Assembly (NCBI GenBank): GCA_037379345.1
Contig: CM074515.1
Location: 47,993,743 to 48,057,742, forward strand
Length of the DNA: 64,000 bases
Reading direction: 5' to 3'
From: Perna viridis
Lineage: Eukaryota
The notes beneath the pieces were generated by a model, which worked only from the letters and a program-made list of their open reading frames with translations, did not search any database and was not told the origin of the DNA. Both the position numbers and the translations under genes were made by a program. Below are positions 9,568-15,439 of the stretch, piece by piece (within the stretch, counting starts at the first letter, position 1; each line of letters begins with the position of its first letter).

Positions 9568-11055
9568 TTAAAGAATGAGAGTAATGGGTACTTCATTGGG
9601 CATTTCTTCCTTGGTGTTCTTGTGTTTTAGCCCTTTTAGTCTTTCTATCTCCGGTATAATCCCAACTCCACAAGTGAATTTGTGTTCTTTCTGTGTACCA
9701 GACCCTTGGTTGTTTGACTTTTTTTGTTCATGATTCGGTGTTTTGTTTAAATGCATTTCTGGTTCCTTTTTTGACCCGGAATCGCTTTTATCTAAGCCTA
9801 AATCTGGTATAAATCCTGCGTTTTCATAGGAATTGAATTTCAATGCCTTTTCTAAACCTGGGTTTTTTTTTCCAATCTTCCTCGAAGATATGTTATATTT
9901 AGCTTCCCAATTTTGAATAAGGTCTGCGTCTCGAATCTGTTCGTAGTTGTGCTCTTCGTCTGTTGTGTCGTCTGATTCGCTGTTTGATCGGTTCCAAGTT
10001 ACGAGTTTTTGAGGACCTTTATTCGCCAATGCCGAGCTACTGATTAAATCTGTATAAATATTCTCAATTCTGTTCTTTAGAATGGGTCGAATCCTGACAG
10101 ACGATCGCGGAAGTGTTGATGACTTTCGTGCAGCCTCTCTCTGAGAACCAGTTGTCCCTTCAGATATGTCTGGGTCGATGTTTTGTTGTGCTGAAACAGT
10201 TATTCTATCGAGAGTATGTCTCTTGTTTTTATTAGCAAGTATGCGGGTTCTGTCAAAATTTAACATTAGTCGTTTTGTTTCATTTTGTTTCACCGGCTCC
10301 TGGTCATCTTCATTCGGCATTGCTTCGTTTTCAGGGATCGTTTTGTAACACATGGGCAGACTTCCATATTTGAAGTTAGTAGGGATCTCTTCTTTTCCGA
10401 CCTCTTTGTTGTTCGTTGCCTGGTTCTTGACATTTTCCAAAAGAGTCCATGGATAAATCATCTGGTTGTTTTTCAAGGCACCTGGGGATTTTATCTGGAC
10501 TTCTGAATCAATACCATTGCATTCCCAGATCGTGTAATAGTCGGTCTCGGAATCAGACGAATTGCTTTCGTCATCACCAGTAAGCCACTTGCTCTCTGCA
10601 TCAGTTGTTGACTCCCCAACGTGCATCCTTGGTAAAGTAATGCCACGTTCCTTCAGGTAATGGTGTTGGTTTTCCGACAGTTCATGCAAATGTCTTGAAG
10701 TCAGGTCAGTTCCGCGTAGACTACCAAACACTGGCAGTGGTTTCCGCTTAGGAGCAGCACGTTCTGGTTGCAGTGAGCTGAATCTGTTAGTAAAGGTCGG
10801 TCTCCCAGTAATCAAACCTGCTCTTTTTTGACGGAACGAAAAGTTATCCTGCTTTTGTGGTTTTGGTTGACCAAACGGCATCATAGAGGACATACAGCCA
10901 CCAGGATATCCCGAAAGCTTAACATGGATGTGCAGGTCACGGTTGCAGCATGGTAATCCACATGTATGTCCCGGAGGACTGTGTGCAAATGGTACTGCAT
11001 CTGAGAAGTAATAGTTGCTTTGGTGGAGTTTAGCTTCGAATTCTTTGGATTTTAT
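9568..11055 (-). CDS. Large terminal coding exon (495 aa, low-complexity, Tyr-motif rich); probable alternative last exon of the echinoid-like gene
   Basis: ORF 10893-9568 extends upstream without stops to acceptor ttttatcattaacag| at 11055 (phase 0: IKSKEFEAKLHQSNYYF...). 1488 nt open in AT-rich DNA with higher GC than the flanks. Motifs ENIYTDL, HNYEQI, SYENAGF; ends ITLIL. Confidence 0.75.
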   Translation of the reverse strand: MKSKEFEAKLHQSNYYFSDAVPFAHSPPGHTCGLPCCNRDLHIHVKLSGYPGGCMSSMMPFGQPKPQKQDNFSFRQKRAGLITGRPTFTNRFSSLQPERAAPKRKPLPVFGSLRGTDLTSRHLHELSENQHHYLKERGITLPRMHVGESTTDAESKWLTGDDESNSSDSETDYYTIWECNGIDSEVQIKSPGALKNNQMIYPWTLLENVKNQATNNKEVGKEEIPTNFKYGSLPMCYKTIPENEAMPNEDDQEPVKQNETKRLMLNFDRTRILANKNKRHTLDRITVSAQQNIDPDISEGTTGSQREAARKSSTLPRSSVRIRPILKNRIENIYTDLISSSALANKGPQKLVTWNRSNSESDDTTDEEHNYEQIRDADLIQNWEAKYNISSRKIGKKNPGLEKALKFNSYENAGFIPDLGLDKSDSGSKKEPEMHLNKTPNHEQKKSNNQGSGTQKEHKFTCGVGIIPEIERLKGLKHKNTKEEMPNEVPITLIL

Positions 11056-14000
11056 CTGTTAATGATAAAAAATGATTAGATATGAGCAATTTTGTGACAT
11101 GAAATAAGCGTTATTTATTTTATTTTCCTGGTGTTAATTCATTTCAAGAATTTACTAATCTTTTAAAAGATCGAAATATTTTCTCAAACTATCTTAATTC
11201 ACAGTCAAAATTTCGACGTTAAACCATGCTGTTGACACTTTTTCAGACTGTGAATCACAAAACAGCCAAATAAAAGAATCATTTAAAGTACTGAACAAAA
11301 TCTGTGATCAACATAAACCAAATTGAAATAAAATATGAAAACACACACATGCTTGTGCATAGAAAATAAAACTGACGAAGAATTAAACAAAATGCATGTA
11401 CTCCAGTAGGAAATAAGCACATAACATTTTTTTTTCTGGAAACACCACAGCCTTGATATCTTAGAATGTATCAGTGGATATACTAGCCAATGAATGGCAC
11501 CAGAGACACCATTAAGTGTCATGCCACGTGTATTCTCTATGTGAAGCAGATATGTTCGATTTGCCGTCCACCCGACTAAACTGTTTTCACTGGAAACCTA
11601 ACTTCATTCCCATGTGTCTTTTAGGTCTTATGCTGGTTCACTGGCCATTCCTGTTCCGATTTCGTTTGATTGATTTACTTACTGTTTGGTAGGGTTGTCT
11701 TCTCTTTGACATTTTCCTCGTTTTATCAACCCAGTTCCTTCATTACTAGTTACCTGTCTTCCTATCGCGTATCAATATAAATAATATCTGTTCACATCAG
11801 TCTTATTTATCCTGTTTTTAAATGTTTTTTTTTTTTAAAGAAAAATATAAACTTCCTATTTTGATTATTTTTGGTATGTGTTTCATCCTTACTGAAGAAA
11901 TACAGTACAGCTCTAACATATATCACCATTTCCACTCTACCACAGTTGACAATTTTTGTAATTCTTCCTTTCAGAGCTTTTTTGAAAGGTGTTTACTGTT
12001 GATGAATATGTTTTGGTGATTTCTATAAGTATGTACTATTTTTATGAAGATTATAAAATGGTGCTTTTGTTGTGTTTCAACATTCCTGTTCCTCTTTCTA
12101 TTATCGAAGAAAGATAGTGCAGCTTTAGTGAGTACCACCATTTCCACTCTACCAGAGTGACCATTTTGTCTTTAAACAGTGATTTGAATGTCTCTAGACA
12201 GATTTTCATAATACCATTACCCACAAAATAGATCTAATTTCCAATACAAATCTTTATTTCAGAGTGTAGCACTGTGGATCTCGCATTACCAATCTTCCGT
12301 TACACAAGGGCTACCCATCTCTTATCCATTATTCCTCCTTCACTACTGAATGGAGAATTCAATGAAACTTTCACATAATCTTCATCACATATTCCCATTG
12401 TGCAGCTCCTATTTTAGATTTAGATCCATAATCAATGGGAGGTAAAAGGTGCATGTTATCAAATTGGGGAGTGTGGGTATCAAGTTAGTGAATATTGCTC
12501 ATAGTTTTTTCTAGTTTTACCCTATCAGGTTAACATATAAGTCAGGAAATTAGAAAAAAAGGGGGTACACTGTATGACATTACATTCCTTTAAAGGCTTA
12601 CGAAAATAATGTTCTTTTGTGTATAAATTTCCACCATAAAAAGAATTGCTGCATACCTAAAACCCCCAATAGTATCAAGTCTTTTTATTTAGTCCCCACC
12701 AGGAAGTTTTTTGAAATTGCACCGGTACATAAAACTATTTTTGTTGTGTTTGGGTACGAGAAACATTAAATAAAATGTACATGTATATATATTTTATTTC
12801 TTCTCAACAAATATTTTCGTATAAAAATTAATTATACACATATGCTAAACATTACAAATGAATATATAAAACAAGTAAATGTTTTGTTGATAAAATGATA
12901 ACGTTTTGAAATATGAACTGTAAAAGTTAAAAATAAAAAGAACTTGAAAGTCAACAGTAAAAATTTTCAACAGACAAAGAATTAAATTGATAACTTTAAA
13001 CATTTAAAACCTTAAAATATTTAAATTGATTTTTTAACAAACAACAATGTAATAATTTGTTCTAATTTTTCCAAAGATCTGAAATATAGAAATACCAAAC
13101 TTGTATCAAAATTGTACATTTAATGAAATATAAAACCGAAGTATTTAATTAGTATTTAATTAGTATTAATTCCAAATTTTTTCTATCTCTTTAAAATTCC
13201 AAAAACTTGAATAATTGCCCTAATTTTTCATTCACAATATAAATTCATCATGACACTAATGCATTGTAAATGAAAAACTAAAGCAAGACATTTTTGCATG
13301 TTATCAGGTATTTCAACAAAACATGAAATTTTGATATCAGCTAATACTAGTATTCAATATTTCTAATTAATTTAACTATAGTCAGTACTCATTCAATAAT
13401 CAGATACACAATACAACCAAATCATCTCCTCATCATTTTAAGCGACTGTCCATGTAGAAACCAGGTAGATCCTTTGATATGGGTGGTAGAGAGTAAATTT
13501 TATCCCACCAATATTTTTGTTCCTACAGAATGTTAACGAATTCTGATGTCATGATGAAAAAGGTTTTTTTAAATTGAAAGTGGATGAATCAGAATATATA
13601 TTCTAAGTTCCTTGAAAAATTATCAACTAAGTTAACTAAATTATGAACATACCAAAGAGTTATTCCCCTCTGTTTTAAAGCTTCTAATAAATTCTTTGCA
13701 ATTTCTTTCTTTATTGGCATTTCAGTAAATTACAAATCAACACTCATTTCTTAGAAAACACGAGTTTGTAATCTCTAATGGATGAAAATTTCTTTAAAAC
13801 AAAATTTTGCATGTGTAACACATTGCCTGGGTCTTCAATGGACACCTTCTCAAACATAAAATTACTACAATAAATTAGTTGTAATAAATGAAAAGGAGAA
13901 AAACTTTTTTTTTACTTAAAAGCTAGTACCAATATGCACTGTAGCTGATATTTTTTTTGAATGCCAAAGCAAAATATACAATCGAGTGATCCACATGTTT

Positions 14001-15284: not shown

Positions 15285-15439
15285 CTATACAACAACTTCA
15301 TAAATAACCTTTTTCGGTTTTGGATGGTCTTGAGTATTATAACCACTTTCAGTCCCCATATCTCCAATCCTGTCGTCTGAAATATCTAAAAACTGTTTAT
15401 CCTTTGTTGGTGATCTTGGTGAATTTGTAAATGAAAGAT
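15285..15439 (-). CDS. Echinoid-like terminal exon (DLSFTNSPRSP...GTESGYNTQDHPKPKKVIYEVVV*)
   Basis: Acceptor tatttttcag, phase 1, TAG stop at 15287-15285, followed by a long AT-rich 3'UTR. Confidence 0.85.

Follow-up and report, generated by a model that had tools for sequence, protein, structure and literature searches.

A conserved 495-codon exon downstream of an Echinoid/nectin-like receptor gene of Perna viridis is a candidate alternative last coding exon

In a 64,000-nucleotide stretch of Perna viridis contig CM074515.1 (assembly GCA_037379345.1, positions 47,993,743 to 48,057,742 of the forward strand; hereafter the window, in whose numbering all positions are given), a 495-codon open exon lies on the minus strand downstream of the gene of an immunoglobulin (Ig)/FN3 transmembrane adhesion receptor. 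This exon, here called the tail exon, is a genuine, transcribed and conserved coding exon that is unable to stand alone in this species. We favour, with moderate confidence, the view that it is the alternative last coding exon of the upstream receptor, reached from a composite terminal exon in a minor long isoform. Such a splice switch had been predicted in a sequence-only reading of the same DNA. The coding exon, its adjacency to the receptor, the sole phase-compatible donor found in the receptor and four fused gene models speak for the prediction; the junction itself was not seen, the major mRNA reads through the donor, and the RefSeq isoforms examined lack the tail.

The open exon that had been noted past the apparent 3' untranslated region (3'UTR) of the receptor was found at 11055-9568, with 495 codons and behind a good acceptor. 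The frame opens directly after a TAA at 11061-11059 and continues as CAG/ATA (here and below a slash marks a splice point), with the acceptor AG at 11057-11056 and the first exon base at 11055. The acceptor is in phase 0, in the context ...tctaatcattttttatcattaacAG/ATAAAATCC. The frame is the longest of the 17 open reading frames (ORFs) of at least 80 aa in the window, the runner-up having 245 aa, and given the stop-codon frequency of the window (0.0665 per codon) the chance of a 496-codon open run is about 1.5e-15 per position. The G+C content is 41.9% in the tail exon versus 30.3% in the 4.2 kb separating both exons (11056-15284). The exon is single copy in the genome of the window, and further contigs, from this species or a very close one, contain a 98%-identical ORF. 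The motifs previously read from the translation (DYYTIW, ENIYTDL, NYEQI, YENAGF, HTCGLPCCNRDLHIH and ITLIL) are all present in the tail.

The first ATG of the tail exon stands at 10893 (codon 55), 18 codons past the motif PPGHTCGLPCC (codons 27-37), and within the window the conserved coding region is not preceded by a start codon of its own, such as an independent single gene would have. Since PPGHTCGLPCC precedes the first ATG and a stop codon lies 3 nt ahead of the acceptor, the tail exon needs an upstream coding exon. ORF calls of other species (P0007, P0027, P0012, P0002 and P0051) read through ...F-Q ahead of the homologous exon start, as expected from ttt cag at a phase-0 acceptor. The many contig ORF calls with an internal Met as their start, or with read-through of ...F-Q, seem to be unspliced and uninformative on splicing.

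A HMMER scan of 1.84 billion representatives with the tail as query returned 23 proteins at E<=1e-3, 15 at E<=1e-10 and 3 at E<=1e-30, the best reaching 1.5e-105. All named relatives are from molluscs (Lottia gigantea, Batillaria attramentaria, Dreissena polymorpha, Plakobranchus ocellatus, Haliotis asinina, Mya arenaria and Mactra antiquata), the remaining ones being contig ORFs without a name. An alignment of 14 family members (A1) revealed the conserved motifs F[AS]H.PPGHTCGLPCC near the exon start, NFTFR, GRPTF.N.F.SLQ, LKGREITLP, GESDD...SDSEIEYY and IYPW.LL, which stand in otherwise variable sequence, and a C-terminus of the form NP[IV]TLIL, with TLIL as the end in 12 of the 14 sequences. 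The window tail is a member of this family, carrying PPGHTCGLPCC, NFSFR, GRPTF, LKERGITLP, TDYY, IYPW and VPITLIL. Four short ORFs (P0006, P0013, P0014 and P0017) are 53-79% identical to inner parts of the tail but flanked, on at least one side, by unrelated residues, and may represent fragmentary or frame-shifted contigs of a related species. A profile search with A1, in which the best 8000 word-sharing candidates were scored, returned 11 proteins and missed several of the alignment's own members, and its silence on RefSeq is uninformative.

Neither the tail nor the last exon of the receptor matched a Pfam family at E<=1. In the ESM Atlas the best score was 0.83 for the tail (exophilin-5, dendrin and other disordered proteins) and 0.76 for the cytoplasmic part of the Dreissena orthologue, both unusable, and the Pfam, HMMER and ESM Atlas searches gave no relatives of the tail outside its own family. 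AlphaFold2 run on A1 gave a mean pLDDT of 45.9, with 364 of the 495 residues below 50, so that the tail is predicted to be a mostly disordered region with linear motifs. Its N-terminal Cys/His cluster could be a metal or acylation site. A full-text literature search matched no paper for PITLIL, PVTLIL, GHTCGLPCC or VIYEVVV, a statement that holds for that search alone.

The exons of the receptor map from 47.8 kb down to 15.3 kb of the minus strand by tblastn with bivalve proteins. Pfam Ig families match the exons at 47.8, 46.9, 42.6 and 40.7 kb, and the Mactra orthologue has Ig repeats plus fn3 in Pfam; the FN3-like exon of the window (39131-39373) gave no Pfam match at E<=0.001. The transmembrane exon lies at 22215-22093 (...VIIIGCVCAAILIALLIVLVIIIIRRRK). 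The order of several Ig domains, then FN3, then one transmembrane helix is that of Echinoid/nectin-like receptors, and public databases call the bivalve orthologues hemicentin-1/2-like, roundabout homolog 2-like and Nephrin. A 30-nt microexon (16255-16226), present in the abundant mRNA of all four RNA runs described below, sits between the exon ending at 17793 and the last exon.

The regular donors of the receptor had been described as phase 1 or 2. No mapped donor is in phase 0, as that description implies, and all 13 are in phase 1, leaving none in phase 2; ten are clear GTAAGT-type sites and three (47492, 41924 and 38799) are weaker assignments. The donor map covers the exons from 47864 downward, with possible small cytoplasmic exons outside it, and between 22093 and 15439 the exon map rests on three mapped exons. 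Since all mapped regular donors are in phase 1, none of them fits the phase-0 tail exon.

A fitting site is found inside the last exon. The terminal exon starts at 15439 behind tttatttttcAG, is entered in phase 1 and ends CCG AAA AAG GTT ATT TAT GAA GTT GTT GTA TAG, the protein ending ...GYNTQDHPKPKK VIYEVVV before the stop. The sequence AAG/GTTATT, said to stand in phase 0 just before VIYEVVV, was confirmed at 15309/15308; it follows a complete codon, in an exon about 4.2 kb upstream of the tail exon. As this donor and the acceptor at 11056/11055 are both in phase 0, the proposed join is in frame. The terminal coding exon thus holds, upstream of its stop, a GT donor in frame with the downstream exon, and the site is a weak one. 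It is the only phase-0 GT of the last exon with a positive matrix score, 1.05 compared with 2.45-6.64 for the ten clear regular donors and within the top 6.8% of the 3637 GTs of the strand, on a crude matrix of approximate consensus frequencies not trained on this species.

The comparison with related molluscs, which had been proposed as a check, found the tail to adjoin the downstream end of the orthologous receptor in at least five of them. The PGHTC motif occurs in 43 of the 84 proteins compared, and four of these 43 also contain the receptor stretch ...SGYST..KPKK; in all four (Dreissena KAH3704012.1, Mactra KAL4228916.1, Lottia XP_009049381.1 and Batillaria KAK7495224.1) nothing intervenes between KPKK and the tail. 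The Mactra model comprises a full Ig/FN3/transmembrane receptor plus the tail and has 1583 aa; for the long Perna isoform about 1597 aa had been predicted. In Mya, WAR04623.1 contains the transmembrane and cytoplasmic part of the receptor and ends ...KQPKKT instead of ...KQPKKVIYEVVV, and WAR04622.1, with the neighbouring locus tag, is the tail. The fused models and the Mya neighbours indicate that same-strand adjacency and the phase relation are kept in bivalves and gastropods. No independent 5' coding exon was found in the tail models examined. According to the source papers, Funannotate/EVM with RNA-seq and Trinity evidence produced the GenBank annotation of Dreissena (PMC9210306), and MAKER with RNA-seq of six tissues that of Mya (PMC11978232).

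Expression was followed in RNA contigs of four runs (X1, X4, X10 and X12, from four different studies), drawn from 14 RNA-like runs and six further ones. Each of the four has a high-depth contig (57-133) that extends from 15441 as far as 13151 (X1 and X12), 12791 (X4) or 13262 (X10, which has a further piece at 12902-13260). The same loose end at 15441 was seen in every run and maps to the microexon 16255-16226, its last two letters fitting the exon ending at 17793, indicating that the four runs contain spliced receptor RNA. In the abundant mRNA, which is the short form, the 3'UTR measures 2.1-2.5 kb. ATTAAA signals at 13160-13144 and an AATAAA at 12798-12793 lie near the contig ends, and the poly(A) sites used by the main mRNA are thus located between the candidate donor and the tail exon, the cleavage sites being approximate as they are taken from contig ends.

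The tail exon is covered at a depth of 2-5, by contigs at 9500-9667, 9733-9936 and 9921-11028 in X1, 10036-10186 in X4, 10032-10218 and 10743-10936 in X10, and 9562-9725 in X12. RNA depth was zero at 11100-12299 in all four runs. The tail exon is therefore transcribed, the upper boundary falling somewhere from 11028 to 11100. An untranscribed or unconserved exon had been named among the outcomes that would undo the predicted switch; both RNA contigs and mollusc relatives were found. Contaminating DNA or uniform read-through was considered as the source of the tail coverage, and the confinement of the coverage to the exon argues otherwise. The ratio of tail to main-form depth looked fairly even across the four runs, at about 2-6%, a contig measure that cannot rank parts of a gene and whose low depths are near the assembler floor; that the long form is minor is the sole conclusion drawn from it. 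Between the two exons, low-depth contigs (2.5-3.3) at 12421-12752 in X1 and X4 are found past the main 3' ends and may be distal 3'UTR (AATAAA at 12689 and 12258) or a precursor piece of the long form. At 12393-12491, very short contigs (31-54 nt, one of 328 nt) reach a depth of up to 74, far above their surroundings, and have a loose end at either side, the appearance being that of a repeated element in distal 3'UTR or intergenic DNA.

Under the composite terminal exon reading, most transcripts retain the whole terminal exon, encode a protein ending in KPKKVIYEVVV and receive their poly(A) tail about 2.1-2.5 kb downstream, as the RNA contigs bear out. In a small fraction, transcription would pass beyond the proximal poly(A) sites, and the weak donor AAG/GUUAUU at 15309/15308 would then be spliced to the acceptor at 11056/11055. 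This splice would exchange the last seven residues, VIYEVVV, for a 495-residue tail ending NP[IV]TLIL. The outcome would be set by a suboptimal 5' splice site in competition with proximal polyadenylation, and its probable effect would be changed cytoplasmic partners and reach of the receptor rather than a simple loss of PDZ binding.

Several observations weigh against this reading. The donor is weak, with T at both +3 and +5, and the free third base of its Val codon is T and not A or G. VIYEVVV is identical in the window and in distant bivalves, so that protein reasons alone account for the conservation of the GT in the Val codon. In all four runs the high-depth contig passes unbroken through the candidate donor, indicating that the long form is minor at most. 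The junction 15309 to 11055, for which RNA had been proposed as the check, was absent from the contigs of the four runs. Rare forms are dropped from such contigs, which therefore do not prove absence, and the longest one on the tail ends at 11028, leaving 27 nt to the acceptor. In run X10 (organism B), a contig of depth 3.7 carries one additional T in a homopolymer at 10823, inside the tail frame, which may be an assembly error or a frame-breaking variant in that organism. All 15 RefSeq isoforms examined (Dreissena X1-X5, Mercenaria X1-X4, Ruditapes X1-X4 and Mya X1-X2) end KPKKVIYEVVV, as does the Sinanodonta model, and searches aimed at fused forms found no RefSeq protein bearing the tail. 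The Haliotis asinina RefSeq protein XP_067674310.1 is the tail alone, 412 aa starting at an in-exon Met. Finally, predictors can join an orphan coding exon to the nearest compatible donor, so that the fused models do not count as independent proof.

Some of these observations would also fit a tail that belongs to a separate gene adjoining the receptor. Such a gene would have a promoter of its own and, somewhere from 15284 to 11056, a short 5' exon that has escaped notice or an unusual start, and the fused models would be prediction artefacts. We regard this as possible, though rather doubtful. The Haliotis protein and a stand-alone Plakobranchus tail model of 1228 aa are what it would predict, as are the short receptor isoforms that alone are listed in RefSeq for the four bivalves and the lack of a junction to 15309 in the RNA contigs; the contigs at 12421-12752, of tail-like depth, could be the 5' exon, but are equally explained by distal 3'UTR. 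A separate gene is hard to reconcile with a conserved motif that precedes the first ATG in the window, with the RNA-free stretch at 11100-12299, with tail models that have no separate 5' coding exon, and with the tight same-strand adjacency in bivalves and gastropods.

Alternatively, the tail exon might be reached from the receptor gene by another route, through an unmapped small exon that shifts phase 1 to 0 or through another acceptor, KPKK/GT not being a donor at all. The sparse exon map between 22093 and 15439 leaves room for such an exon, and the RefSeq orthologues have several cytoplasmic cassette variants (1039-1136 aa). A Potamilus model, too, departs at KPKK/ into unrelated sequence; it was rejected as a further fused tail because that sequence does not resemble the tail (local score 27, shuffle mean 28.5). 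We consider this route improbable, since the join falls exactly after KPKK in the models of four other species, the tail frame opens only at the 11056/11055 acceptor, and no RNA contig was found in 11100-12299. Least probable is that the open frame has no function and is a leftover, or that it reflects transcriptional noise past the receptor: its low RNA depth (2-5 compared with 57-133), the lack of a Pfam family and the predicted disorder would be compatible with this, but not easily its 495 open codons, the motifs and C-terminus conserved between bivalves and gastropods, the 98%-identical ORF in other contigs or the confinement of RNA coverage to the exon.

Drosophila Echinoid (Ed) ends in EIIV, a class II PDZ site (X-phi-X-phi), and binds the PDZ domain of Canoe/afadin (PMC2712996). 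The short form of the Perna receptor ends in EVVV, which as a sequence pattern fits class II, and the conserved tail end TLIL fits the same pattern. As both ends fit, the switch, if real, would exchange class II PDZ-type ends, the new one being carried on a long flexible linker with additional motifs, and not simply delete PDZ binding. The proposal that it replaces the PDZ-binding motif, in the sense of a loss, is therefore not upheld. The role of signalling scaffold that had been assigned to the tail is speculative; what is predicted for this region is disorder, interspersed with short conserved motifs.

The receptor resembles Ed in having several Ig and FN3 domains, one transmembrane helix and a class II PDZ-type C-terminus, EVVV here and EIIV in Ed; the likeness comes from the domain layout and the pattern of the end, the orthologues being publicly named hemicentin-like, roundabout-like and Nephrin. 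We know of no long alternative tail for Ed, and no search was made for one. In the immunoglobulin heavy chain, the mu-s/mu-m choice between secreted and membrane-bound protein is a proven composite terminal exon switch. The locus described here is like it in having a suboptimal 5' splice site in the last coding exon near the stop, a proximal poly(A) site used in the main form and a downstream exon that gives another C-terminus. Unlike the mu-s/mu-m switch, both forms here would be membrane proteins differing in their cytoplasmic ends, and the junction is unobserved. In vertebrate nectins, which are junctional receptors of the Ig superfamily, the choice among alternative 3' exons determines whether the tail has the afadin-binding end. 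In contrast, the tail described here is a module of 400-700 aa, predicted to be disordered, whose named members are all from molluscs and which has a conserved end, TLIL, of its own.

A wider interpretation may be drawn from these comparisons, on which our opinion is evenly divided. It would be an ancient switch in a nectin/echinoid-like junctional receptor of bivalves and gastropods, in which a deliberately weak donor in the first Val codon of VIYEVVV competes with polyadenylation and VIYEVVV is exchanged for a disordered tail of 400-700 residues with a second, different class II PDZ-type end, giving one receptor two sets of junctional or polarity partners. As part of the same interpretation, and held to the same degree, the tail family (PPGHTCGLPCC ... 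NP[IV]TLIL) would be so far undescribed.

The features of the locus are listed in Table 1.

Table 1. Features of the receptor 3' end and of the tail exon (window positions; slashes mark splice points)
Feature	Position	Strand	Details and evidence
Penultimate microexon of receptor, 30 nt	16226-16255	-	cag/ATAAATCC...GAAGGAG/gtaagc, phase-1 donor; RNA loose end at 15441
Receptor terminal exon, coding part	15285-15439	-	Encodes ...SFTNSPRSPTKDKQFLDISDDRIGDMGTESGYNTQDHPKPKKVIYEVVV, stop at 15287-15285; sequence, tblastn of bivalve orthologues
Candidate internal 5' splice site AAG/GTTATT	15303-15311	-	Exon would end at 15309, phase 0; sequence
3'UTR of abundant short-form mRNA	12791-15284	-	Contig ends near 13151 (X1, X12) and 12791 (X4)
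Tail-exon 3' splice site	11056-11085	-	Branch-like ctaat, pyrimidine run, aacAG; in-frame TAA at 11061-11059
Tail exon	9568-11055	-	495 codons plus stop TAA at 9570-9568; ORF, relatives, low-depth RNA contigs
PPGHTCGLPCC motif, most conserved	10945-10977	-	Tail residues 27-37; upstream of first ATG at 10893; alignment A1
Conserved C-terminus PITLIL	9571-9588	-	Family pattern NP[IV]TLIL; alignment A1

Elsewhere in the window, a 67-nt direct repeat (75% alike, 11889-11955 and 12101-12167, spacing 212 nt) lies between the 3'UTR of the receptor and the tail exon. Two ORFs on the opposite strand, 4814-5551 (+, 245 aa) and 45426-45752 (+, 108 aa), gave no Pfam match at E<=0.001. They contain near-identical stretches (of the type SNTAGVCRKAEDAYPTGAPG... 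in the second), a similarity that suggests a dispersed repeat.

If the join is real, a junctional adhesion receptor has a conserved long isoform that is missing from the current reference annotations of several bivalves, and with it an unnamed protein module common to bivalves and gastropods. The locus would then be a simple natural case of splice-versus-polyadenylation control over the cytoplasmic partners of a receptor, in which EVVV and TLIL would be two short, testable C-terminal ligands of PDZ proteins, with afadin and Par3 as examples. Should the join prove false, a proper gene model would still be needed for a conserved orphan coding exon, and a number of fused models in public databases would have to be corrected.

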